DNA of 64,000 nucleotides from Selaginella moellendorffii (GCF_000143415.4 NW_003314283.1:737955-801954); one strand, 5' to 3'; positions 44,330 to 62,500 are shown, numbered from the stretch's first letter. The notes: a model not told the origin generated them from the letters alone. Translations and numbers: made by a program.

Positions 44330-45425
44330 AGCTCAAAAACACGGTGAGAATAAGTACTCTTCCTTCCCCACAACTTTGCAACTATGGCTGTAGGTTGCCT
44401 TCTAAGCCTAAGCACTCCAAGCGTGGATTGTCAGTGAAAGATGACACCAAAAACAGTGAAAGAAGACAAAGTCCACTTTGTCTCTGTCCCAACCGAAGCA
44501 CTAGTTACGCACAAGTCGAAATATATTTGCATGACTTTCACGATCAGTGTGGTCATAAACTTCAGGTATTCCAAGTGTAGCAAGCTCGTACTCACGAAAG
44601 CTGAAGACAAGAGTCTTGTGACTTTGTGTTCTCAAGGAAGCCTCCAGACTCATGCAGCTATCCAAACAGTCCCTGAATTTCCAGCTCTTGCAAGCACATT
44701 GCACTCGAGCTGCAATACATGTGGTGGGTGACTCGTAGTTAAACTTCTGAGCGAGGGCAAGCGTCTTGAGCAACCAACAGTTGGATAGAAAACTCGAGAG
44801 TTCATCATTAGCCAAGCTATTAACAAGCCATAGGCTGAAATCCTGTATCAGTGAAAAGCATGAATTCGTGTGTCTCAAGCCTACTACAACTTTTAAACAG
44901 GAAAAGAGTGTGTAAGCACACTTACGCTGAAAGGCATGTCATGAACCTCGACCAACTGGTGGACTGCAGTTTTGGGGCCTGCTCAAAGCCGACAGTTAAA
45001 GAGTTTCATATGCAAAGAGTAAGCGTATACCAACGGGCAATGAAAGCTTCGAAGCTGCTTCGTTGATGAATAAATAGCAGCTGGAATTGTCTACGAAGAC
45101 TATGGCACTTGGAAGGTTACAATTGCCGATGACGTACTTCCATAACAAAGCCTTGTTCATGATCTGGATGAAAAACTAACTCTTTTAGATGCTGTGGACC
45201 ATTGATAACCAGAGTTTCACCCGTCAAGCTCGCAACACTAATCAGGCTCATTCTAGAGAGGTTTGGAAACCCATTAAAAAGCTCCATGGGATCAAAAGTG
45301 TTCAGCCGTGACAAGCTCAATTTCTCAAGCCTGTTACAACCCATAACTTTCATAATCGTGCTTTCTTCTTGGAATTTTGGATGAAAAACTGCTGCGGGCC
45401 ACTGTGATAATCGATTCACTCCCAT
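44330..45425 (-). pseudogene. RNI-like/F-box-LRR remnant
   Basis: CNRLEKLSLSRL, FPNLSRMSL, SSFLSNCWLLKTLAL, CMSLEASL; stops and frameshifts. Confidence 0.5.
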
Positions 45426-45801
45426 TTAACTTACACTCTGCTATTACTTCAAGCTTCGGAGCTATATCAATAATCTATATATATATATATATATAAAATC
45501 ATCCTAATCAATATATATTACTTGTATATCATCATAACTCAAATTCTCGTGAAACTTTAAAACGAAGAGAGCACTGACCAATTAATTTCTTCCGTGCTCA
45601 AAAACGTACCGAGTTGTTCTAAAGTTCCAGGTAATAGTCCGCAAGTGTTTTTAATTGATTAGGATGGCATCATGAAATTGTGTAACTATCCGTATATTCT
45701 TTGATTGGTAAAAAAAAGGAGGCAAATGTTCGTCACTAGTAAGAAACTACCACTGCAAGTAGGCGGCTACTACGTTTCGTCTGCCGAGAAAGAACCTACA
45801 A

Positions 45802-48018
45802 CTACCACCCTCCCCCAAACCCACCGCTCCTGCCCCCGAAACCACCGCCACCAAAGCCACCGCCGCCACCTCTCCCAAATCCGCCGCCACCGTAGCCGCC
45901 GCCCCCTCGTCCACCTCCAAAGCTTCTTCCGCCAAAACCGCTGCTCGCCACGTAAGTGTCCCTCGAAAAGTCTTGTGCGCAGCTCATGTCCACGTTTGGA
46001 ACGTTGAGCGCCTCGAATCTACACCCAACGTCGTGCTCGATCGTGTCCCTCACGCGCCCCTGCGCGTAAGTGTGCATCAAAATCGCCACTCCTTTCTTCC
46101 CAGCTCGGCCTGTTCGTCCCGACCTGTGAACGAACGTCTCTGAGTCGCCAGGAACTTCGTAGTGAATCACCTGTCGATCCAAACTTTAGTTAGCTACACG
46201 CTTCCCTGAGAGATCGATGAGTTTCCAGAAAGATATACGTACCAGATCGACATTGGGAATGTCAAGACCGCGAGCAGCTACGTCCGTTGCTACCAACACT
46301 GAAAATCTGCCGTCTCGGAAGCCGGAAAGCGTTCTCTCACGTTGGAACTGTGGGATGTCGCCGTGTAGAGCCTCGCAAGGGACCGAGCGGCTCATGGCTT
46401 GAGCTACATTGTGCGTGTCGCGCTTGGTTTTGGCAAACACGATCACTTTCCCACCTTTGCCATACGACTGCAAAAAGAAGAGGAAAAAGCAACGACCATC
46501 AGCGCTATGTCTGGATTTCTCTTACGTACATTCACAAGCTCCTTGAGAAGAGGACCCTTGTTATAGTCGGATGCCTCGCAAGAGTAAAGCTTAATACCCT
46601 CTGCAAGCTTCTCGTCGTTGTCTCCCACCTGCAGAGGAAACATAAAATGTAAAACCTGCGTTTTGGAAACAAATTGCTCACCAGATCGACCACAAGAGGA
46701 TCTTGCATGAACCGTCGCAACAAGTTCTTCACCCAGGACGGCATTGTGGCGGAAAACATCATAGTCTGCCTTTGCTTGGGGAGCCTCTCCATGATCTTCT
46801 CCACATCTTCCGCAAAACCAGTTGCAAGCATCTGATCAGCTTCATCCAGAACCATGAACTTCACCCGGTTCAGCAGCAAAGAACCGCGCTGTAGCATATC
46901 GATGACACGGCCAGGGGTACCGACAACAACGTCGATTGGCCGCTCCAGTGATCGTCTTTGAGACTCGATACTGACGCCTCCATAGATGCACACTAGTGTC
47001 AAATGTGGAGCAGTCGACGTCAACTCTTTCTCGACTTGCTTTGCTAGCTCTCGTGTCGGAGCCATGACAATGCAACGAGGACATCCAGGCTGAGTCCTGC
47101 AAAAAGAAAAAACCAACGGATTTAGAGCTTCAGAAACAAAGTCCTGGGAGGGAATACCTGCTTGTAGCTTCGCGCCTTTCAACAGTGATAGTATGGAGAA
47201 TGGGAAGACCAAAAGCAAGAGTCTTCCCCGTTCCTGTCTTAGCCCGAGCAATAAAATCGCGTCCTTTCATCGCAGGTTGATACACCGCGCTCTGCTCGGG
47301 AGAAACTCACAAGTTAATACACGAGAGAAACTGCCACAAAGACTACAGCCCATACCTGAACAGGAAAAAGATTTATGATGTTCTTCTGTGCGAGCGCTCT
47401 CACAATTTCCGGATCAATCCCGAGCTTCGCCACTGCGAGTTCCTCACCTGCCACCACCGCCGACGGATTGATAGTCTCGATGGGTGGACCAGTGTACGTC
47501 TCCTGTACTCCAAAGCCAGGTCCCCGAGAAGAACCAAAGCTCCCAAATCCTCCACCGCCACGACCACCACCTCCATAGCCACCACCACCACCACCATAGC
47601 CACCACCACCTCCATAGCCGCCGCCACCACCATATCCACCCCCTCCATATCCGCCACCGCTTCCTCCTCGACGATCATCGTCATAGTCAGTCTCTGGAAA
47701 TCCTGCTTGCCTTTGCGGAGTGGTCCAGTAGGAGCGTGAGTCCTGGGGAGCCGGGCTTGGGCTCGGCCACTGCCAGTCATTGTAAGTAGCACTGACGCGC
47801 AGCCTCTTGAGAATCCCGGGGACTGGATGGAACTTGGATGGTCCTCCATTTGTGAAGCTATACTTCGTCGCAGTTCCAAACGCCCTGCTGGAATCCAGGC
47901 TCGTCCGGAGCTTGAGGCATCGCGGCACACGGGCGTGCCAGCTTATGATGCTCCGCATTCCCGCCTTCTCCAGCGGCGCTGCACTGCACGACATTGGAGA
48001 AGACAGCCTATCAGACAT
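45802..48018 (-). CDS. DEAD-box RNA helicase, organellar RH3/RH9/RH53-like, multi-exon
   Basis: LFPVQ (Q motif), [80 protein letters not shown]; start may be the ATG at 47994. Confidence 0.95.
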
Positions 48019-48369
48019 GGCCAGGATCAGTGAAATCGAAACGAAGCATCGGGAAATCCCTTGCCCTCCTCTCTCGGGGAAGCGCAGCCATGGCGATGCA
48101 AGAAGAAAGCGAGAGAGATTTCGAGGGAAAGAATGCCAAGAAAAGGGGCAGAAGAGTAAATACCTCGGAGAATGTATGGCGCCGATGAGCTGCTAGCGGC
48201 GGCGGCAAGGCGGCGATGTGGTAGCTCCTCCTCCCCTCGTCGCCGTGCGCGGCTAGGGTTCTTCCACACTGCGGGGTTTAGGGCTTTAGCTGCGGAGATA
48301 CTCGGGGATATACTCGAGATATTTTTGCGACACTTTATCTCTGGGTAATCGTGTGTTCGAATCAAGTCC

Positions 48370-49476
48370 ATGGAATTCTTAGGGCAAAGTATGCAGCGTC
48401 TTCTAGGGTTTATCGGCCGCAAGGCCTTGCCGCTAGCAGAGTATGAGATCTCGGAGCTTCCATTCTGGCGATCGAGCGGAAGCGAGCTTCGCACAAGCGA
48501 TCTGGTGGCAAAGATCCACGGACTTCGCGAGCGCTACAAGCAGCTGGAGGAATCGGAGCTCAAATCCAAAAGCTACACCTACGAGCGCAGGGCGCTGGCG
48601 GCTTACTTGTTCCAGGTAAATCACATCGAGGGCGAGGGATTCGAGAGCTTTGAGGAGACGGAGGAAGCCATCGCGAATGGAGCGCTGGAGCTTGGGGACG
48701 CCGTCCAAGCCGATCACAGGCTGGAAGCATTGCGCTGTCTGTATCGAGGACTGAGGATCTTCTTCCCAGCGAAGAACAGCGGCAAAGAAGAAGAGGACGC
48801 GATCGGTTCCAAGCTGAGCGTCCACAAGATCCTGGAGGCTCACACCGAGCTCATGAAGACCACAAAGGCCGAGATCGCCGGGACACTGCGACGCCATCCT
48901 AGCCAAGTGGTGATGACGAGAACAAAGTCTGGAGGAATCCACGTCTTTATGTGGCCGACCGAGGTGGAAGCAGCGCTGGAGAGGCTGCTCGATCGATCCA
49001 GGGCCGAGCTCGTGGGGCTGCTCCAGCGCGACGACACCGATCCATCCGTGGACACCGTCGACAAGATCATCAAGTTTGGAGCCAGATTGTTCCTCGAGTT
49101 TGAACACATCCATCCCTTCCTGGATGGAAACGGCAGGATTGGAAGGATACTTCTCGCTGCTGTTCTTCGCCAAGTGATGCCGTATCCAAACGTTCTCTTC
49201 GCGGCCGAGGGGAGCGCAATCGATCCTCCGTTCGTGAAGATGGATGACTACTACGAGTGCTTCGAGAGGGCCCAGGACAAGCAGGATTTCGAGGTTCTTG
49301 GCGATGGAGATAGCGGGCCTTTCCGTAAGGTGGCGATCTCGCAAAAGGCTGTGGCCAAGACCAAAGTCTATCCTCCAGCGGACTTGGCTGCCATGGTCGT
49401 GGAGGGTGTCTACGTTGGATGGAAGAGCTTCTTCGATGCTCTAGATCAAAGCTACACAAGTAGAGAGGTTAAGTGA
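48370..49476 (+). CDS. Fic/Fido-domain protein (putative AMPylase), intronless, 368 aa
   Basis: HPFLDGNGRIGR at 49111-49146 matches HxFx(D/E)GNGRxxR; VNHIEG at 48616-48633 resembles the class II inhibitory helix; ILEAHTELM..AGTLR Fic core. Confidence 0.92.
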   Translation: MEFLGQSMQRLLGFIGRKALPLAEYEISELPFWRSSGSELRTSDLVAKIHGLRERYKQLEESELKSKSYTYERRALAAYLFQVNHIEGEGFESFEETEEAIANGALELGDAVQADHRLEALRCLYRGLRIFFPAKNSGKEEEDAIGSKLSVHKILEAHTELMKTTKAEIAGTLRRHPSQVVMTRTKSGGIHVFMWPTEVEAALERLLDRSRAELVGLLQRDDTDPSVDTVDKIIKFGARLFLEFEHIHPFLDGNGRIGRILLAAVLRQVMPYPNVLFAAEGSAIDPPFVKMDDYYECFERAQDKQDFEVLGDGDSGPFRKVAISQKAVAKTKVYPPADLAAMVVEGVYVGWKSFFDALDQSYTSREVK

Positions 49477-50404
49477 GGTTCTTTACTTGTTTTACCTTTC
49501 AACTTGCCACTCTAATCTTTCCAAAGAACTTGTGAGAAATCAGCCACTCTAGGCCAGTGTTAAAGCCACCGATCCCGCGTTCTAAAGCTTTCCATCTTGG
49601 CCCTCGCTTCTGAAAGAAAGGATGGAGGATTGTCATCGTATTTACTCAGCCTCAATCCAGAAACTCTTGGTAGTCGCTCGCTTGGTAGTCGATAAGATTA
49701 GCTTTTATTGACTTTCATTGATATTCATTCACTTTGCATTGACCATGCATTGACTCTTTTTTTGTGCTTGTGAGTTAGATTTAGAGCTCAAAGAGGTTCA
49801 CCACTATAACAACGTCATTTTTGAAAGTCAAGAAGTAAATAAGGCTGTCTATGATGGGATCAAGCAGCTGTGTGATAAGAAATATCAATTGCTAATCAAG
49901 GCCCATACCCAGATAATAGTGACAGGCATTCCCTTGAGGCCTAGACATGTAAATTTGTAAAGTCTATATAACTTCCTATGATTGCTTTTTCCTGTTACAA
50001 GATTAGGCACAATTGTAAGAATAAAAGCCTATGAAATTAACTATTAATAATTTAAATGCTTAAAATTAGGGATAGTGGATATATTTTAAATATTTTTGGA
50101 TATTCTAGTGTGTTCTAATGGTTAATATTGATTTAGATTAGTCTTTTTTTTATAAATTAAAAACATTGTGAGTGCATAAAATATGGGCCAAATGTATGGC
50201 TACGATGCCGTGTATTAGGCATCATATATTCCCTTTTAGAATATTTATGAATATGCTTTTAATTGGACGGTTACTACTTGACTAGCAATAGCTGTTGGAT
50301 TGCTTTCAATTCGGACCACTCACTCCTATATATAAGATAGAGTTTTTGGGCTAATTGATATGCATATTTTCTGTATTCCTTTTCCATATTCCATGCACTC
50401 ACAT

Positions 50405-50420
50405 TAGTGGAGATGAGGGG
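50405..50420 (+). promoter_or_regulatory. Primer-binding site, tRNA-Ala-like
   Basis: tagtggagatgagggg next to the LTR end; about 2 mismatches to TGGTGGAGATGCGGGG (plant tRNA-Ala 3' complement, from memory). Confidence 0.6.
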
Positions 50421-53150
50421 CACCTTTCATTATCCCTGAGGAATCCTTGGATTTGGAATTTTGGTTTAGATTTAGCTTTTGCATTGTTTAAATTTAGCTT
50501 TTTTCATTTCCTTTCTTTCATTCTTTCCTTTCAAAATTTTAGTTTAAATTTAGCTTTTCCATTGTCTAAATCTCCCTTTTCTTTTAATTTTTTTCTCATT
50601 TCTCTTCTTTTGCTCTTTCTTTTTCATTCATTTTCATGGCAAAGTAGTAGTCTCCTCTTCTAACTTTGAAGTAACAGTTGGTGCAATTGTTTAATACCAT
50701 GCAGTTGTAATTGAACAACCAAACTTAGTTGATGACGACATTCACAGCATGTGGTATAGTTCCTCTTGCTCTTTGTGCCAATCCTTGCGTTCGGCCATAA
50801 TTATTTCATAGGAATCCTGGGGATGATGTGTACCATTGGCTTGATCACTTCATAATGATTGCCATATATCATTCTTGGGATGATACTCGATATTTGTGTG
50901 AGTTTCTCACGTATCTTTAAGGGACGGTGTTGCAGTGGTACAATGGTTTGAATGCAACCATTCGTGGGGATTGGATCCCGAACATTTTCAAACGCACATT
51001 CAGACATGTTGATGATTGTGATGATGCCTTTCAGGAATTGCATCGTCTTCGTCAAGGGCTATATGAGTCGATGATGCAATTTGGCGTTCATTTCTGAAGC
51101 TTCTTACTTTGTGTGGAGCCAAATATGTCAAAGCGGATCAAGCTAGAAATGTTGTGGCCAGCACTTCGCCAAGATTTTGTTGGACTTATGCATGCACTTG
51201 CTCCAACCACCCTTGACGATACTCTTTGTTTGGCATAACATTATGAAACGTCGCCTCTTCCACTTCTCGTTGCCCGTCCTTCTACTCCACTTCCGATGGG
51301 TGATGGTCCTGTTCCAATGGAGGTTGATGCTGCTGCTGCTCAAGTCCAAGGACAAAGGCGAGGATGTGGTCGTAGCCGTGACATTTGTTGTTGGGCATGT
51401 GATGAAGTTAGTCACACTTATCGGCATTGTCGGCGTTTTCTAGATGGCGACTTCCATTTCCTAGATGGAGACCTTGGTGTTAACAACATTCTGTTGGTGC
51501 TATTGTAGTGGAAGGTTTGGACATCGAGATGCATCCGGGAAACGAAGAGTCACACAAGTAACGGAGGGATCTTGCGCGAATAAGTTAATGACCCCTCCAT
51601 TTTTCTTTTAGGAGCATCATCAAGGGGTTCACTTGGCACTAGTTCATCCAGTGTTTACTTTCCAAACTCGTTTTTATAACAAAAGGTCTCTTATTATTCT
51701 CTCTGTGTTGGTTGATACAGGTTCAAGTTTATCTTTTATTGCTCGACCTATTGCCACATGTTGCTGTCTACACTTGCATCGTGTGGTGGAACCAATTTTC
51801 ATTTTTTATGGCAATAGCTGTACACTTACATATGCACGGGATGAGGTGGATTTGGTTGTGCATGTGGGTGATCTCAAGTTTGAGTTGCAATCATTACGGG
51901 TGGTGTTAAGTCAAGCTTTTGACTTCATCCTTGGTATAGATTGGTTGCAATGCAATTATGCCAAATGTAACTTTGAAACTTCTCCCCCTTGTCTCATACT
52001 TCTTTATGTTTCATCTATTCTTTTGACTTCCATACCTCTTTGTCTCTCTACTTTTACCTTTACTTCCATTACTTTTGTCCCTTCACTATTTCCTCTTATG
52101 TTTCTGTTTTGTTCTACTCTTCCCTTTTCCAATCCCTCTAACAATCTTTGTGTTGCAATGGTTGACTGGCTCATGAAGGAGTATTTTGATCTTTTTGAAT
52201 TTGACCTATCATCTGGGGCAAACTTTCAAAACATTTCCTGCAGGACTTCCTCTGCTGTGGTGGTGGGGAACCGAGCCTGGCGTTGTTCTTACAGACCTTG
52301 ACATGATCAGTCATCCGATTCCAACCAGGGATGCTCGTCCAATCAAGGTTTCTGTTCGTTGTCGGTCACTCAAAAAAATCAAGATTTTACGTGTAAACGT
52401 CAAGGAAATGTTGGAGAAGGGTGTTATTTGGAAGTCGTGGAGTCCTTGAGCATGTCGTGACAAATTCTGATAGGAGTATTCATTTCTGCATTGACTATCA
52501 TCCGTTAAACGAAGTGACGGTCCCGAATGTGTACCCTCTTCCTCACACTGCTGATCTCTTGGACTGTCTGAGGCAAAGTCATTAGTTCACCAAGCTAGAT
52601 TTTGCTTCTGGGTACTGGCAAATATCGATGGCCAAAGAAGATATTCATAAAACTGCTTTTTGTACACCATTTGGTTTGTACGAGTTTTTGGTGATGCCAT
52701 TTAATTTGAATAATGCTTTAGCAACTTTCAAGCAGATGATGGACAAGGTTCTTTGTGATATGCTGAAAGTGACTACTGTCTTCATTGATGATGTCTTGAT
52801 TCACTCGGAGGGGACTTTAGAAGAGCATATTCGTGATGTTTGTAAAGTGTTGGATCGGCTACGGGACATTAGTCTAAAACTAAAGCGGTCAAAGTGCGTG
52901 TTTGGGTCCAAAGACACAATTTATCTTGAGTACCATATTTCTTGTGAGGTTTTGCAAATTAATCTTAACAAACTTGTGGCTATTCTAAAATTCCCTACTC
53001 TGAAGTGTGTGAATGATGTATAGTGCTTTTTGGGCAAAGTGCAATATCTCGGTCATTTTGTGAATCATTTTTCTGATCGCACTACACTGTTGCAAGCGTT
53101 GCTAAAGTTATCAATGTCATCTTTCATCTAATCTCCAGATTGTGAGCGGG

Positions 53151-54794
53151 TGTAACGCACCTTATCTCTCTCCCCTTAAGCCAACTGGAAAAGGGGCAAT
53201 TGCTTGATGAGAAAGCCCTTAGTGGCTATTTTATCCCCATTTATCCCCCAAGGTTCCAAGGATCCACGGTGACAGTATATCCAAATCTCATCCCATGCTC
53301 ACATGCGCTACACTCACCCCCCCCCCCCCCCTTGAGAGATGTCAATGTCCTCATTGACTATTGACTAACAACCCCTATTGAGCCAAGGGGAACTAGCACT
53401 TCCATTTCCGCACTCAATCTACCAATCCTTCCATTGTGTAGACTGTCTATTCCATGTGAGGCAACTAGTCATCCACCCGTACCGTAGTCCCACGGTGGAT
53501 ACCTTCGTCTGGGATGCTCCACAAGAGGAAGGATGTATGCATGGATGTCCAATATGTACGATTTTAAATTTTAGGGGTAGGAATATACCTTGCTCAAGGG
53601 TATATTATATTTTAGGTAGCCACTAATCAATGGGAATTGAACCCGTGCCATTTTCTCTGATACCAACTATAGCGCACGTGGTTTTGACCATTTATCCTAT
53701 GGTGATTTACCATAGGATAACACCATGAAGCGGAACCTAAACCCTCTTTATGCCACGTGACAGATGCCACATGTCCATGCCACATGTCCATAGGAACCCG
53801 AGGTTCAGGGCCTTGGGCCACTGAACGAAGGAACGGTGCCAGACTCCCAAGCATGAAGCCAAAGAGTGATGGAACCGAACCACGGAGCAACTCCCAAGCA
53901 TAAAGCCCAAGGAGCAAAGGAACAGGAGCCCGGAGCAACTTGGAACAGTCCTAGAGTAACCAACATCCCAATGCCAGGACCAGCATGCAAAACGGAGCCA
54001 AATGGTGTCTGGCACTATTTCGGCATACCGGTGGCCTAACGTAAGGACATGGGTACTCCACCAGCTAGCATGGAATGGACTTGGGCTTAGACCCAAGCTG
54101 GACGCAGAACAAGGACAAACACGTCAGCGGGAGCTAGACTATGCCTCAGGTTGGTCGGCCATGCCCGACCTACCCACTATCCCTATTATACATTGGGAAC
54201 CCCCCACAGCCCCCCCCCCCCCCCCCTTGAGGAACACACGCTTTGGGCCCAAGCCTCCCTTAGTATCAGGAGTTAGTCTCTGGGACAAGCTTAAAATTTA
54301 CTAAATATGGAATGTCCCTAGATTGCGAATTTGGACACAGGACGAACACCATTGTGTTCAGGACAATCTCTACATTCCATAGATATGTCAAATGAGCAAA
54401 TCTGGACACTTTCCATAAATAGCATTTGGGACCGAAATGAGACTAACACTAAGGGCATGATAGCGAGGGTGTTTGGCAGACACGGTAAGCTATCATCTAG
54501 CGATATTGAGGGACCAAGCTCAATATTGCGGGGGTTCCCAACACTAGCAAGTGCAAGTCAACGAATGAGTTTCTCTAACCAGGTCAAGTATGCTTGACAA
54601 ATAGCACTTAGGAATTCCGTCCTTATGCCCATCTGGTCAAGTGCACACGCGAGGACCAGTTTCTCAACTAGCTTAGGTGGAGACTGATAACAAGCCCAGC
54701 AATACCGACCTCCTGCCATTGTGGCAGTAAGAAAGAATATCCGAAAGGACTAGCTGACAGGTAACTTTCGATACCCAAAGTCACATTCGCGACA
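53151..54794 (-). mobile_element. Nested non-autonomous LTR-type insertion (1644 bp) with a 5-bp TSD GCGGG
   Basis: TSD 53146-53150 / 54795-54799; TG...CA termini; minus-strand PBS TGGTATCAGAG (tRNA-iMet) at ~53655-53665; poly-G PPT at 53317-53331 followed by a 162-bp LTR-like unit 53151-53312. Confidence 0.88.
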
Positions 54795-55399
54795 GCGGGT
54801 GTTCATGGATTTCAAAGAGCTATTGATGACTCCTCCGGTTTTGGTATATCCTGACTACACTCGACCTTTTATTTTGCGTGTGGATGCACTTGGCCCTCAC
54901 AACATATTTATAGAATAAACAATAGTTGGTTCGTAATCTTCTAATGATAAAATTATTTATATAATGTATTTGCTATTTAATAAGAAGTATATTTACTACT
55001 ATTGGCTGTGGTGAAAATTGAAACCCAAAACTTACTATGCACATGATAGGCATTTAGGATAAGTATAGACTTATATGTAAATTTTATTTTTAGATTAACT
55101 TAGATTTGAAAGAGTATTCAACACAAATTTATATTTTCTTTTTCATTGTTTTAGTATTTATTTAGTAGTTCATTGTCTCCCTTTCTCTTAATGTTGAGTT
55201 CTTAACAATTAAACAGTCTAATATCAATAATTTCCTTAAATTCTCTTCAACTCTAGTCAGATCTTAATACTCTATAAAAGTTATATAAAACATTAGAGCA
55301 ATCCAATATAACACTTCATTTATAACTCTAATAAATTATTTAATACCAACAATGGCTTCCTTAGAGAGGTGATGAACTCAAAAGACAAAGGACATAACT

Positions 55400-58300
55400 T
55401 TATAGATTGAACTTTTGGCACTTTAGGCAACACTTGGCATAGTTTATGGGATCTTGATGCATTATTGTCCAAAAATATCTATGCCGAAGAAGAAGTTGAA
55501 CTGTGGTCTTCCCAAAAAAGTATCTTGCATAAGTGTGGGAGGTTTACAACAACTGGGGAACCTTTTACTCCATGACACAATAGAGAAGAATGCAAGAGGA
55601 AGTTTGCTAATATAAAGAGCCATCGAGAAGGCAATAGCTAGATGCCTTGACATCAGGAGTTGATCATTGTTCCCTTGTGAGGTTCACTAGGAACTCATTT
55701 TGAGGCTAAGTATGTTGCCACCTCTTCAAGAGCATATGGAATGGCTTGGGTGTTCACCATTGATACTAGGAATTGATTGGGATCAAGAATACACCTTTGC
55801 TTGATGACAAACTTTGGTTGGAATTTTTGGATGGTGGTGATCCATGAAAGAACATGTGTGTTCTAAAGAGATTTCTGTAGTACAAATGTCATTACATAAG
55901 AAGAAACATGAAGAAAGATATCTCTTTCAAGGAGCATATGTTGGAAATGCTAAAGAGTGTACACCATTGTGACAACCTCTTTTTCAACAGTCACAAACTT
56001 TTGCTTAGACTTTGTCATAGAGTGGAAAGCAAAGTATGTGGCATGAAGTGGCTAATCTATTGTAGCAATGAAAGCTCCAAAAGCTCATTCATCAGTGGTG
56101 ATAAAGATGTCAAAAGGTTGGCCAAGGACTAATGGTTGTAGAACTAGAGCTTGCTACAACATTGTGTGTAGTTTGGTGAAAGCCTGTTGGGCTGAATCAT
56201 CCTAGAGAAAGGATGTGTCATTCTTCCAGTGGATGTGTGAGAGAGGCATAATTGTGGATGAACTGATGGAAGAAACCAGTTTGGCCAAGAAATCATCACA
56301 TTTTCTTAACATTTTCTGGTGAAGGGAAGTTAAGAATCTCTTTTCTCTTTGTATCGTATGGTTGAATTTCATCACGAGAGACATTAAAACCAAGGAAGTG
56401 GCATTTTGTGATATTGAAGTTACACTTTGCAATGATGTTGGCAACAAAGAAAAACTTGCTCCAAGTGATGAAAATATGCATCAAATATGACTAAGACAAA
56501 GTAGAGATCATCCATGTAAACTTGAGGAATATCCCCTAAGATATCATGGAATGCATGGGTCATAAAATGCTAGAATGTGGCTCCTGTGTTACAAAGCCCA
56601 AATGACAACATGCTAGAATGTGGCTCCTATGTTACAAAGCCCAATTATAACTTGAGAACCTGTCCACAAAAGAGTAGAAGGGATGGCCTGTCAACTTATC
56701 AATGATAGAGTCTATAAAAGGCATAGAAAAATGATCTTGTAGTGTGACTTTGTTGAGATCTTGAAATTCCATATAAAGCCTAAGTTTGTCTTTGATGTTG
56801 GGTAACAACACTAGATTGTAGTGGCACATCTTATGCTTGATAGGCTTTATTGATCTTGAAAGGGTGATGCAATGTATGATTATGTCCATGGGAACTCTTG
56901 GAAGCTAGGTAAAGGCATCCTTGAATCTCCAAAGTAGGAGTTGGGTGTTAACAATCCTAGACACTTTCCATAAATGGCTAATAGAGGGGCATGATATTGA
57001 GAGTGTCTTAGTAGACAAGTGCACTCAAGTGTAAATCTATCAGAAGAAAATCCGCATCCAAACTTGCATAAAGCAGCCATCCTAGTGTAGTTGGGATATC
57101 CTAGTGAGCTGTAGGGGCCAGAGGGGTGTGGTCCTCAAGTAAAGAGGCCAAACCTATTGCTTGCATATCCCACAGTAATGTGAAGGGTAAAGGTGGCAAA
57201 AAGCACAGGCCTTGCAGAAAAGGTTGAGTTGCCATCATATATTAGTCCTGGTATTGATTGACTTGTAGTTGACACAGAAAACTCATGGATGGCACTAATG
57301 CTATATACCTCTGTCTCCGGCACTGATGCTATTTACCTGAAACAAGTTGAACTTACTGTCTGATTTCCTGAACTAGGGAAGACCAGGGTGAATTAGACAA
57401 CTTGATGACTCCTGCCTCCAACATCCTGCATACTTACTTGGCTACCACTTGCCTTTGCTTCAGAGTTTCTCGATATGGTAGCTGCTTGATCAGCCTCTTA
57501 GAGTCTTGTGTCGCAAGAGACTTGTCTTCCCAAGTGTCCAGTATTGAAAATATCCCTGAACTCTAGAAGAAACTCATCCAGCCTATCTAACTATCTTGAC
57601 TCCTCTGCAAAATTACCAACCTTCAATGTGTTGTTGTATCAAGTATAGTTGATCTCTTTTGTTATATTAAGTGTTGCTTGCCACTTTGGGATAGATGATA
57701 TAATCATATATGATGGCTCTGTTGCAAATTGATGTAAAGTTTTCTTGATCCATTGTATTGTATACTAAGTTGAATATTTGTTTCTTAAATTTTAATTGGT
57801 AGTTTCTGAATTACTTCTAAGAATGTTCTAGTGTCCAACATCTAAAGAATGAATTTTCACTGATTCCACCTTGTATGTTGCTTGTTGTTTCCTATCATTT
57901 TGTTTCCCCAATTCTAGGGATGTAGGTGTTGTTCAATTACTTCCTAACGTCTAGCACATTCTCTTTCAAGGTCAGTGTTGATTGCCTTGGGAGCTTCCCA
58001 AGGTATAACCTCAATCAGTATTCTTGCATTATAGGTTTGTAGTCTTGATATAGGATCTCCTAAAATAAGTTGGTATTTCTTAAGCTTGTTCTTCCATGTT
58101 GGCCTTGAAGAATGTTTATCTCTAAACTTAGATTTCAATTTTGGATCTCAGTCTTGAAGTCAAAGTTCAAAAGTGAATTCAATCTTGATTGAGGTATTAT
58201 TCAATTTTGCCTTGAGTTTCTTCTTTTCCTTCTTTGATTTCTATGTTCAAGCTCCAGTTCAAGTTGATCTCTTGAACTTAGGTTTTGAGTTCAAGGTTGT

Positions 58301-59900
58301 CTAACTTGATTTCATTATCCTGATTCCTTAATTCTTCAGCTATCATTGTTTGTCCTGCCAATATGCTATGGTGTATAGTCTAACAAGAGTACTTTTTGGC
58401 AAAGTTACTCAAGAGGTCCTTGAAGAATTTGGTAGAGTATTTTGCATTTTCCTCAAAATCTCTAAATCTAAGGGCATTGTAGCTCAAAAGTTCCACATTT
58501 TGTTTTTGCTATAACTCTAGTTAATTCAGTGTTGAGGACAAGTGTTAGTGGTTGAAAGGTTTCTAGCTTATGTGTGCAAAGAAACTCAATTATTGTTTGC
58601 TAAAAAATGTGTCTTCTATACACCCAAGTCAAAATTCTCCTTGTTGCAAAGTAATCTAAGAAAACAAGTTGTTATTTTGGTATAGTTTCATTTACATATT
58701 CTTTCTACTTGCTCATAATCCTGTAAATTAACCACAAGACAACCTCTCGAATCTTAAGAAAGCATATAATACTTTCCCTATCTTCTTTTTCTATGTTGTT
58801 TTCATTTTCTTTAATCCCTAGAATTTCATTTACTAAGTTCACCTTGTTTTCTTAGATCTTACTTCTACTACCACTTTTTCATCCTTGATTCTCAATTTAG
58901 CTTTTGCCCTTTTGCAAATGTCACAGTTCCATTTAGGATATCACTACATATGTAAGGTTTGAAGCAATTCCTAAAATCACACAAAAGGCAATCTTCATAT
59001 TTTGTACAGCTTCTATCCCCAAATGGGCAATTGTGCTTTATCATTCTTCATCCATGATCAATAGTTATTTTGTGTCAACCACTTGCCAAAATAATTATGT
59101 GCTACTTTTTGATTTTTGAAAGCTTCAATCTACACATTTTTTTTATGTCTTGGGTCTTTGTCATGTTTTTTAACTTTAGTTCTTCATATTTGTCTATCAC
59201 TTCATTTTTTTTTCTTTTCTTGTTTTCACTGAGTTTTGTTGATTTCTCTTTTCTTGCAATTCTTCACTTCATTACACACAAAAATTTTATCTTGCTATAC
59301 TCTATGCTCTTCATGTTGCCTATCCCACTATGGTCGCTAGTGGAAAACCTACAAAAAATCCCCCACTGAGATCTTCCAAGTTTTCTAATCTTATTCCTAA
59401 AGCTATAGCTATACTACAAGAAAAATGCTCTTACTCTCTTGTACCAAGCCATGTTGTGTATGTAAATTGGGAAGCACTAAAGTTGGATTGAAGTCTAGGG
59501 CATTAATCCAATTGGTTTACCAAGCTTGGAATGCACTAGAGCAAGTTGCCAAAAGAAATTTGAATTTGCTCTAATAAGTATGCTAGGAGTGTGGTTGTGG
59601 TGTTTTGAAAAAATGGAACACTCTATTGTAAATCACTATGTGAGTGGAAAACCAAAAGAAACCAAACTTGAAGACTCAAGTTTAGGAATGCATTCTTGAG
59701 TGAATCAACATTAGGGATGTATTTCGAACGTTCACTCAAGATGACATATGAGTAGTGGCTACTATAAAAGTTGGACTTAGAATATTTGAGACTCATTTCT
59801 AATCCAAAAATATATTGCAATACATCTCCCATTGTTTAACTCCTTGGCTCTTCATTGCAATTCCTTACTTACTCATTGAGCTCTCATCAAAAGAAGCTCC
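55400..59900 (-). mobile_element. Second degenerate Gypsy element (Athila/Tat-like non-chromovirus), minus strand
   Basis: RT LRLYMEFQDLNKVTLQDHFSMPFIDSIIDKLTGHPFYSFVDRFSSYN (56632-56790); KCHFLGFNVS; PBS tagcgaccatagtggga (59323-59339, tRNA-Arg(UCG)-like) abutting an LTR end at 59341; outer boundaries approximate. Confidence 0.8.
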
Positions 59901-61899
59901 AAAAAAAACCATTAGAAGATCATTGTATTTTTGTGCCTCTACCATACTCACCACCTTCTATTTAGCCTAATGTCTTTGCCCATGCTCATTGAGAAGAGTT
60001 GCTAACTATTGTCCATCTGAGATGGTCATTGTTCATAAGCACTAAGTCCATTGCTTTGTGTCAAGACTAGACAAGGATGATATAGTCTCCATTGTGAGAT
60101 GCTCTAGCTGCCCCATAATCAACCACTAAGAAATCACACCTTGAAGTGTGTACACCTCTATAAATACTCATTGGGACAATAGTATGGTTGGCAAATGTCT
60201 TGAGAATGATTGCTATAATAAATGAAATTTCTAGGCCCAAATGAAGCATAAGGTGTAAAGAAATTATATTTGCTCCCATAGCCAAAATCTAAAACTATTC
60301 CATCAATCAATGTCCTAACAATCGCAATTGGTGTGAGAAAAGTGCTTGGATCCAATTGAACTTGCCCAACCTAGAACTTTATAAACACTCAAGGCTAAAG
60401 TATTCTTGGAGAGATAAGGACTCCATACCAAAGTCTCCAGGTCTATCACACACTCAACTAAATGTTCTTTTATTACAACTTCTACTGCATAGTTGCCAAC
60501 TTACTTGTTGCAGAATCTTCTATATATAGTAAGATTCTTATCTCCTAACATTCCTCTTATAAAAGCATGTGAAACATCACTTAGTTAATATAAATAGTTC
60601 ATGAGTAATCTTATTATTAGGCAAAATGGCTCTAAGGGTAATTATGATATTTATGATTTTAATTTTGGCATTAGGCACCTGCTTTGACCACCTAATCAAC
60701 ATATGTCAAAAGTCAACAAGGGTATATTGGATAAGGATGGTGGAGCTTTTGAGGTAACTTGGGGTGGTTGGGCAGTTAGGAACTTAAAAAGGTAATTTAG
60801 ATAAGATTAGGCCACTTTGGCTTTATTATTTAGTGCAGGGTTATTAGAGGAGTTGGAACTAAGATGAAGGTTGGAGTCCTAATATTAATGGTGATACTAA
60901 TAGTAGTGTTAATGGAGTTTATAAAGGTTTGGACTATCCATGATGTTGTTCATGAGTTGCAAACCCTCAATAAAAATTAGTAAAAGATGTTATGACATGA
61001 TAACTACCATGCATGGGCAATATTGAGGCACTCGAAGCTGACAACAGTAGTGCTCCAAATAAAACTTACTTGATAGATCAATTTAAGATTTCAACTTTTT
61101 TTAGTGATAGCGGTGTGAATGAGTATTTAGCTTGGTTAGCCAATGTGAAAAAGTGGCTTCTAGAAGAATTTTAAATATAAAGGTTTTAGTGGTTATTCCA
61201 ATGGTTTTGCATGATAGCAAACTTTCTCATAGATATACTAGCCTATATGAAGTGTTAAACTACATTGGTAAAGTGGTTTATCAAATGCAACCAATTGTAT
61301 TTGGGATTGAATTTATCTGGGAAAATTCATCTGGGATAAAATTTATCTAATATTTTATGTTAGCTTGGAATGAAGGGTCTAATGATTCCTTAATATATAC
61401 AGCTAAAAGCTTGAGCAAAGTTCCTTAGAAAAGGTGATTATTAGTATAACTCATGTTTGGGACAAAGACTCTATTAGGAAGAATAGTTAGATGCCAGCTT
61501 GATCAACATGGGTCAAATTTAAGGTCCAAGGGTAAAAAACATAATCTACCCTAAGGGTTAAGACTGAAGTATAGTGAAGAACATTAAAAGGAAGTGTAGC
61601 ATAGTTTAGGTGAGGTTAGGCCTTGGTTATAATATGAAATCCTTGTCTTCTAGCATATAACAATTCTACAAAACACATCATACATCACTTTCCACAAACT
61701 TTTAAATGACAATTTGCAAACTTAAAATTAATCTCTCAATGCTACAAGTGAAATATCACACTCAGAAGTTTATAACTGTGAACTTCAGAATTCCAGAACT
61801 CATGGCAGACACTTTGTTGGTTCTCATATTCATGGCATTTTGTGTCATAAGCTAGAATTAAATACGACCGATTGTGCTCTCCACCAGGGGTACTTAGAG

Positions 61900-62500
61900 G
61901 GATTCCACTTTTCCATGCTCCATCCATGAGAGGCTATCGCCCCTTGAGTGCTGCACATCAAGCAGGAAATCCAAGCTTCCAGCAGGACATCACTCGAGTT
62001 GTGCAAAGCCGCTGGTCTCTTGTGCGGTGATGAAGATCATGAGCTCTTTCAGCACCACCATGACCACCATCACGACAGGAGCGCTATGGAATCCTCCACT
62101 TGAGATCTTGCCGAGAGGACCTTCTTCCAGCTCAAGACGCTTGTTGGTGCCAAGAACATACAGGTGCCACCGCCGCTGTGCTGGGAAAACTCCATCCCTG
62201 TGAGTAAACAACTCCATCTGCTGCTAGAGCCTGCGCTTGCATCCATGAATCTGTCCCAGCTCCTGAGCCAGTCTCCATTTGCAGTGACGAGCAAGGATAG
62301 CCTGGCGATATGCTGGTATCAAGCATGAGACCAACGCTTGTCACATCTCGGCAAAGTCAGGCCTCTTCGACCCTCCACAAGCTCGACTTGAAGTATACGG
62401 TCAACACTCTGGAGTTTTATCCAAACAAGCCATTCCAGGTGGTGGAGACGAGCGTGGTGGCTGCAAATGGATATCTGGCCTGTCATCCATGACTTTCCCA
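61900..62500 (-). pseudogene. GC-richer gene remnant, possibly PPR-like
   Basis: Weak similarities only (YFKSSL..EEA..RDVTS; MELFTHRDGVFP). Confidence 0.25.

Follow-up and report, generated by a model that had tools for sequence, protein, structure and literature searches.

Does Selaginella moellendorffii possess a Fic enzyme of its own, and if so, where does it come from and what might it do? The question is raised by a gene in a stretch of 64,000 nucleotides from this plant (GCF_000143415.4, NW_003314283.1:737955-801954; this whole stretch is called the window, and positions are counted from its first letter), in which positions 48370-49476 of the plus strand hold an uninterrupted open reading frame (ORF) of 368 amino acids with a Fic domain. 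Work on AMPylation by Fic proteins, the transfer of adenosine monophosphate (AMP) onto other proteins, has dealt with bacteria and animals; in the latter, FICD controls BiP, a chaperone of the endoplasmic reticulum (ER). The eukaryotic Fic proteins listed by Kinch et al. 2009 come exclusively from metazoa and a few fungi, and a 2025 review describes FIC proteins as absent from plants and fungi (PMC12409994). Our results indicate that the window carries an expressed nuclear gene for a soluble, single-domain class II Fic enzyme from a multi-copy intronless family of lycophytes and ferns, which would act as a cis-autoinhibited AMP-transferase; we give this reading as a whole a probability of roughly 0.75. 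The features of the gene on which the argument draws are the following.

48370-49476, plus strand: Fic-domain ORF, from the ORF list, the Pfam Fic match (52 bits) and an intact copy on a public scaffold
48391-48393, plus strand: second in-frame ATG (Met8), probably the start codon, from the ends of the transcript contigs
48616-48633, plus strand: inhibitory-helix motif VNHIEG, residues 83-88, with Glu87 encoded by nucleotides 48628-48630, from profile alignment and the AF2 model
49111-49146, plus strand: catalytic Fic motif HPFLDGNGRIGR, residues 248-259, with the catalytic His248, from ORF translation and conservation
48383-49748, plus strand: extent of the unspliced Fic transcript, from RNA contigs, with a 3' untranslated region (UTR) of ~270 nt

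The reading frame ends in one terminal stop, and its maximal extent is set by an in-frame stop 8 codons upstream. The contigs of the Fic transcript begin at 48383, 48404, 48422 and 48452, all downstream of the ATG at 48370, and in run X1 adapter sequence adjoins 48383; translation is therefore more likely to begin at the second ATG, at 48391, and to yield a protein of 361 amino acids, with the reservation that transcript starts cannot be fixed from contigs. The N-terminal extension ahead of a conserved PFWR block measures ~17-24 residues and is poorly conserved among paralogues; in the window protein it is short and basic and lacks a transmembrane-like segment. The organelle targeting that the sequence-only reading thought possible finds no support in it.

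The assignment to the Fic family was examined by profile, motif and structure. The hidden Markov model of Pfam Fic (PF02661), with which the sequence-only reading had proposed to check its prediction, matches at 52 bits (gathering score 24; E=1.3e-13) over profile positions 2-93 of 93, so that the intact 368-residue frame with a catalytic motif and an upstream VNHIEG, as first described, is borne out. NCBIfam gave only sub-threshold matches to bacterial Fic equivalogs, and a sequence search of the PDB with the window protein returned only Fic proteins. The motif HxFx(D/E)GNGRxxR is complete, including the catalytic His; H248 and N254 do not vary across 111 homologues, in which P249, F250, D252, G253, G255, R256 and R259 show conservation of 90% or more. 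Neither of two known deviations is present, that of Doc (HxFx(D/E)GNKR; residue 255 is G, not K) or that of AnkX (HxFxDANGRxxV; residue 253 is G, not A, and residue 259 is R, not V). An AlphaFold2 (AF2) model built from the 111-sequence alignment reached a pLDDT of 88.8 and a pTM of 0.89; an earlier run with 5 sequences (pLDDT 48.8) was discarded. In the model, strands 182-184 and 190-192, the predicted beta-hairpin flap, precede helices 196-219 and 227-247. Compared with the PDB by Foldseek, the model matched only Fic proteins, with 44 Fic chains at E<=1e-3 and probability 1.0, and the top matches were all class II (BT_2513, human FICD, C. elegans Fic-1 and SoFic; TM-scores 0.54/0.73). The window protein is thus predicted to adopt the all-helical Fic core fold.

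The VNHIEG motif lies at the end of a predicted helix (residues 61-86) and precedes the catalytic motif by ~160 residues. When a profile was built from ten plant members, it matched Fic-1 (E=1.7e-15) and FICD (E=2.6e-12), and in these alignments the plant block FLFQVNKIEGEGF falls onto YHTVAIEGNTL of FICD and Fic-1. The entries for wild-type Fic-1 (5jj6) and its E274G variant (5jj7) differ exactly opposite plant Glu87, and for this reason Glu87 is equated with the inhibitory Glu, and Val83 with the Thr of the motif. The Glu-Gly of the (S/T)xxxE(G/N) signature is present as E87-G88, with Glu kept in 9/10 plant sequences of the alignment (A4), and the Ser/Thr of the first position is absent, every aligned plant member having Val or Ala there; a textbook SNAIEN occupies this site in the bacterial relatives P0004 and P0005. 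The combination of a retained Glu with a Val at the S/T position, noted earlier from the sequence alone, is hence upheld by the profile alignment. No tetratricopeptide repeat (TPR) was matched in Pfam for the window protein, and no transmembrane segment was found, the maximal Kyte-Doolittle 19-residue mean (KD19) of 1.39 being located inside the Fic core. Hydropathy and Pfam scans therefore agree with the sequence-only reading that an N-terminus of the FICD type is missing, and by its architecture the protein does not qualify as a FICD orthologue. Judged by its sequence, it is a class II-type Fic/Fido protein, with the inhibitory helix in cis and N-terminal to the core.

The gene is a genuine nuclear gene of Selaginella moellendorffii. 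In a BLASTN comparison, window positions 45535-52219 match S. moellendorffii scaffold GL377593.1 at 98.1% identity with collinear flanks, and the public scaffold has the same 368-residue ORF intact in the same context (L003:5194-6300); the gene is thus intact in the same context in two independent sequence versions. The two alleles differ by 4 nt in the ORF (L12I, E141A, R319H and one silent change), and their divergence is 0.36% in the Fic ORF versus about 2-3% in the 3' flank.

The Fic gene is also transcribed and truly intronless. Contigs of four public runs (X1, X3, X6 and X7), from four studies, were aligned on 44800-50400, where the gene upstream of Fic, on the opposite strand, encodes a DEAD-box RNA helicase.

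45883-48325, minus strand: DEAD-box RNA helicase gene, 5' part, from Pfam DEAD (120 bits), six joints and the spliced translation
48326-48382, no strand: gap of ~57 bp separating the transcripts of the two divergent genes, from the contig ends of both

Each run contributed one Fic contig (X1 48383-49748, X3 48404-49567, X6 48452-49679, X7 48422-49627), none with a joint. In all four, the same helicase introns are skipped (46168/46241, 46467/46530, 46625/46679, 47095/47157, 47291/47356 and 47983/48164), and these six joints read CT..AC, that is, GT..AG introns on the minus strand. Because the helicase introns are spliced out in the contigs, the runs are RNA, and the first description of the gene as intronless among intron-rich neighbours holds: joint-free Fic contigs come from runs that are spliced in the helicase, and expression is present in every run. 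Contig X1 has C at 48791 and X6 has T at 49290; as each of these letters is that of the other allele, transcripts are made from both. Since the helicase and Fic transcripts diverge ~57 bp apart, the gap between them suggests a shared bidirectional promoter.

To place the gene among its relatives, an exhaustive HMMER search was made, which yielded 285 matches at E<=1e-3, only 6 of them at E<=1e-30. Those close matches that bear a name come without exception from two plants, S. moellendorffii and the fern Adiantum nelumboides. At least nine loci could be counted in S. moellendorffii (the window gene, P0001/2, P0003, P0006/154, P0010, P0011/156, P0012/157, P0013/158 and P0014), and two transcripts, P0008 and P0162, are 68-71% identical to an Adiantum protein and presumably come from other ferns. 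In a tree of 100 rows calculated with IQ-TREE, the 11 plant rows form one clade with a support of 100 in the Shimodaira-Hasegawa-like approximate likelihood-ratio test (SH-aLRT). Within it, Selaginella paralogues surround the Adiantum/P0008 pair, and Adiantum P0016 and Selaginella P0013 occupy deeper branches. The 27 named bacterial sequences form a clade apart from that of the plants. The sister group of the plant clade comprises 57 representatives; two of its members lie on contigs of 0.6-1 Mb that look eukaryotic, their gene calls being few and fragmented and including an SH2 fragment and a split major facilitator superfamily gene, one is a EukProt entry, and one lies beside a glycosyltransferase in a dense bacteria-like context. 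In the same sister group, a metagenome contig of 620 kb from ENA (L089:1-5927) carries three tandem Fic genes with sparse coding and an SH2 fragment; its eukaryotic look suggests Fic expansions in a protist. Among the clusters of the ESM Atlas, the nearest by language-model features are eukaryotic Fido families of Mollusca and Ascomycota; the nearest by shape are bacterial Fic proteins of ~350 residues, with TM-scores of 0.62-0.65 over residues 17-368.

The paralogues are only 39-54% identical, with synonymous divergence (dS) above 1, and the plant Fic clade is therefore old. Word-indexed protein searches added only two fern-like transcripts among the best 8000 candidates, and within the same scope the clade was not seen in seed plants or bryophytes, a weak negative; wide occurrence across land plants, which would have made the gene an ordinary inherited one, was thus not found in the searches run. 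In our reading, the clade predates the lycophyte-fern split, or it spread between both lineages long ago. Its ultimate source may be an ancient horizontal gene transfer (HGT), into an early vascular plant or an earlier ancestor, or an old eukaryotic lineage; a scan of 185,579 prokaryotic species yielded none above ~31% identity, and this in the core only, and gave no donor candidate. The sequence-only reading had proposed a horizontally acquired or lineage-retained system: the part that implied a recent or Selaginella-only acquisition falls away, and what stands is narrowed to a clade shared with ferns, well supported and represented by at least nine loci.

Long-term constraint is evident across this clade. 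The complete HPFxDGNGRxGR is present in 12/12 translated members, and the ORF is open at 7/7 S. moellendorffii loci read as DNA. Nei-Gojobori ratios of nonsynonymous to synonymous divergence (dN/dS) were 0.15-0.40 in eight pairs, rough values in view of a saturated dS above 1, and because of this saturation the true ratio is probably lower than computed. A lack of expression or of selective constraint would have spoken against the first description; both expression and long-term constraint are present.

If the protein works as its relatives do, the catalytic cycle can be outlined by homology. His248 would deprotonate the hydroxyl of a target Ser, Thr or Tyr, and the deprotonated hydroxyl would attack ATP at its alpha-phosphate, with AMP passing to the target protein as a result. 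Carried on the chain's own inhibitory helix, Glu87 would reach into the active site towards the second Arg of the motif (R259) and hold ATP in a non-productive pose, leaving the resting enzyme autoinhibited; alternatively, it may support the reverse reaction, the removal of AMP, as in FICD and EfFic. Beyond this, a broader scenario may be put forward tentatively, although we hold it to be less probable than not: that lycophytes and ferns keep an old, expanded, FICD-like family of cis-autoinhibited AMPylases/deAMPylases, lost in seed plants, whose paralogues act in different compartments. If it were true, non-seed vascular plants would run a reversible protein-AMPylation signalling layer, contrary to the reviews.

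How the gene came to lie in this genome admits other accounts. That the Fic ORF of an associated microbe was wrongly joined to plant DNA might be thought of because Fic genes are overwhelmingly bacterial, the ORF lacks introns and its GC content at third codon positions (GC3; 0.68) exceeds that of the neighbouring helicase (0.53). Contamination or misassembly is effectively refuted, however, by an independent public scaffold or haplotype with the same ORF in the same context, by a spliced host helicase that begins ~57 bp away, by the lack of any prokaryote above ~31% identity among the 185,579 species scanned, and by the nearest relatives themselves, which are six other Selaginella loci flanked by typical plant genes, among them those for pentatricopeptide repeat, RNase III/Dicer-like, leucine-rich repeat kinase and pectinesterase proteins; the linkage to flanking plant genes, on which the first description had made its case depend, is established. 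A recent bacterial transfer into Selaginella only, which would make this a young foreign gene outside plant biology, would agree with the absence of introns, with the patchy distribution (the searches run gave no member from seed plants or bryophytes) and with the frequent HGT known for Fic genes (PMC4454073). Such an event is very unlikely, since fern proteins (Adiantum P0007 and P0016; transcripts P0008 and P0162) lie inside the clade and are nested among Selaginella paralogues, the paralogues have diverged as far as described above, and among the nearest outgroups, at most ~31% identical, are one EukProt entry and three contigs, two of them eukaryotic and one bacteria-like in appearance.

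What the gene does is the other matter on which opinions could divide. It might be a decaying or neutral relic, functionless and transcribed only via a promoter shared with the helicase, and for this speak the 3 nonsynonymous to 1 synonymous differences between the alleles, a divergent transcript that begins ~57 bp from a strongly covered gene, and the dispersed state of the family together with its position near retroelements. Against decay stand the open ORF in both alleles, the seven open Selaginella loci and the retention of all catalytic residues in every clade member despite dS above 1, the low dN/dS and the lower allelic divergence of the ORF relative to its 3' flank, so that we regard a relic as quite unlikely. 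Somewhat less remote, though still improbable in our judgement, is an enzyme of other chemistry or direction, mainly a deAMPylase like dimeric FICD, or a transferase of phosphocholine or of uridine, guanosine or cytidine monophosphate (UMP, GMP or CMP). By profile, FICD and C. elegans Fic-1 are the best relatives of solved structure, and the Glu of FICD equivalent to Glu87 is needed for deAMPylation; in addition, a mycobacterial Fic protein with cytidine diphosphate (7cb8) is among the top matches. The complete HxFx(D/E)GNGRxxR argues otherwise, as it is reportedly the signature of AMP-transfer-competent Fic enzymes according to Engel et al. 2012, also the reference for class II, and deviations of the AnkX and Doc types are absent. 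Some points nevertheless weigh against the cis-autoinhibited AMP-transferase of an expressed plant gene that we prefer. The runs were guessed to be RNA and proven so indirectly, by the joints of the neighbour, and their contigs give no expression level or transcript ends. The difference in GC3 from the helicase, if mild, is there, and the allelic differences alone are no proof of recent purifying selection. With Val in place of S/T, the helix might not regulate in the textbook way. Lastly, the canonical motif leaves the nucleotide unfixed, as some Fic enzymes transfer UMP, GMP or CMP.

How a family of this size could be overlooked is probably explained by its public annotation. The public model of the window locus (P0009/P0155) has 154 amino acids and starts at residue 270, after the Fic motif. 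Six further models (P0001, P0003, P0006, P0010, P0011 and P0012) each leave out a GT..AG stretch, in frame and 99-297 nt long, in which the motif lies, and at all six paralogue loci the genomic ORFs run uninterrupted through the omitted segment. The loci concerned, from public models versus genomic ORFs, with omitted segments of 99, 132, 138, 168, 297 and 276 nt, are the following.

L001:6001-7092: misannotated Fic locus
L002:6001-7071: misannotated Fic locus
L091:2501-3382: misannotated Fic locus
L092:2501-3550: misannotated Fic locus
L093:2501-3526: misannotated Fic locus
L094:2501-3442: misannotated Fic locus

The catalytic motif is thereby removed or truncated in the public models at 7/7 S. 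moellendorffii loci checked, and none of the seven models carries a precomputed Pfam match, which probably accounts for the family having escaped domain surveys; as long as the models stay as they are, surveys of public proteomes will miss it. The omitted segments are most likely a systematic gene-prediction artefact, a simpler reading than splicing. Rare but real in-frame 'exitron' splicing may occur at the six paralogues and would yield motif-less, catalytically dead isoforms; at the window locus, no motif-removing splice was seen in the transcript contigs of the four runs.

The paralogues also differ at their termini. The one at L001 has a signal-peptide-like hydrophobic start (MLLRFILAIALVIAVDARA; L001:6001-6060) that ends in A-R-A and has a KD19 of 2.02, and the one at L093 has a basic C-terminal KKRRRK cluster resembling a nuclear localisation signal (L093:3460-3523); other paralogues show neither feature. 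On account of these predicted termini, the paralogues may act in different compartments.

Some further observations were made around the gene. The helicase start codon is probably at 47958, behind a 5'-UTR intron at 47984-48163 (180 nt), and the contigs of the 5' exon end at 48305-48325; one run has an alternative joint, 48006/48163, in this intron. The helicase N-terminus is rich in Ser, Arg and Thr, like a transit peptide, and is followed by a long GGYGGG repeat ahead of the helicase core. A scan of the intergenic gap for sigma-70 promoters and terminators gave nothing useful, and is irrelevant for a eukaryote. A search of 47500-62000 for long terminal repeats (LTR), with direct repeats of 80 bp or more as the criterion, came up empty, and so there is no sign that the Fic gene lies inside an LTR element. 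A retrotransposon aspartic-protease ORF is located 2 kb downstream of the Fic gene (window 51633-52301, plus strand), and in Adiantum a retrotransposon integrase ORF is located 0.5 kb downstream of the Fic orthologue (L007:9397-10242, minus strand). At window 44896-45135, the contigs of two runs have an 81-nt segment replaced (44948/45030, with 19 other letters) and a joint that runs back 240 nt; these suggest a structural difference or a small duplication between the assembly and the sequenced plants.

Our findings point to an expressed and constrained gene with a complete catalytic motif, and to the plant-specific Fic clade around it, as the new element here, within a known enzyme family and with an ordinary predicted chemistry. 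The interest lies in its lineage distribution, in the contradiction of current reviews and in the systematic misannotation that hid the plant Fic family, and the public S. moellendorffii Fic loci should be re-annotated. The question that follows is what role Fic AMPylation plays in non-seed vascular plants, and why it is missing or unseen in seed plants. Full-text literature searches on Fic or Fido proteins in Selaginella returned nothing relevant, and the first description's view that Fic proteins are not a characterised part of land-plant signalling agrees with the 2025 review, which does not grant plants any. Khater & Mohanty 2015 (PMC4454073 supplement) place amoeba, plant and fungal Fic proteins with bacterial ones in an 'E2' group; plant Fic proteins are mentioned there in passing and attributed to HGT, and neither species, gene nor analysis is given for them.

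Among characterised systems, the closest in design are FICD/HYPE and C. elegans Fic-1, which have the same helix in cis N-terminal to the core, the I-E-G and HPFxDGNGR. FICD/HYPE and Fic-1 are ER-resident, bifunctional AMPylases/deAMPylases of BiP. They have a membrane anchor and TPR repeats, whereas the window protein has neither; they carry Thr at the first position of the helix motif, where the window protein has Val; and they are encoded by single-copy genes, in contrast to the multi-copy plant family. Specific to the plant proteins are the N-terminal PFWR block and a C-terminal PNVLF...EGVYVGWKRFF region, and in structural alignments the identity of FICD and Fic-1 with the window protein is only about 14-18%.

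Among bacterial proteins, SoFic of Shewanella (3eqx/3zcn) and BT_2513 (3cuc) are likewise soluble, of ~350 residues, with a cis helix and a canonical motif. BT_2513 is the top Foldseek match to the window protein (E=9e-8; TM-score 0.73 by target), yet both are only about 14-17% identical to it. Many bacterial class II members have a C-terminal DNA-binding domain of the winged-helix type (HTH_24/MarR_2), whereas Pfam detected none in the window protein. In class I modules (FicT/FicA and VbhT/VbhA) the helix is supplied by a separate antitoxin gene, unlike the helix in cis found here, and in the place of an antitoxin neighbour the upstream gene is a divergent eukaryotic helicase ~57 bp away.

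The one member of the plant clade that already bears a fitting name is P0013/P0158 (XP_024542721/XP_024515747), which RefSeq calls 'adenosine monophosphate-protein transferase fic-1', so that automated annotation had already recognised one plant-clade member. It branches deeply, is ~29% identical to the window protein and has a complete catalytic motif, and it differs in having Asn at the site of the inhibitory Glu (VNTING); from its sequence, this protein may be naturally de-repressed, or it may be unable to deAMPylate.
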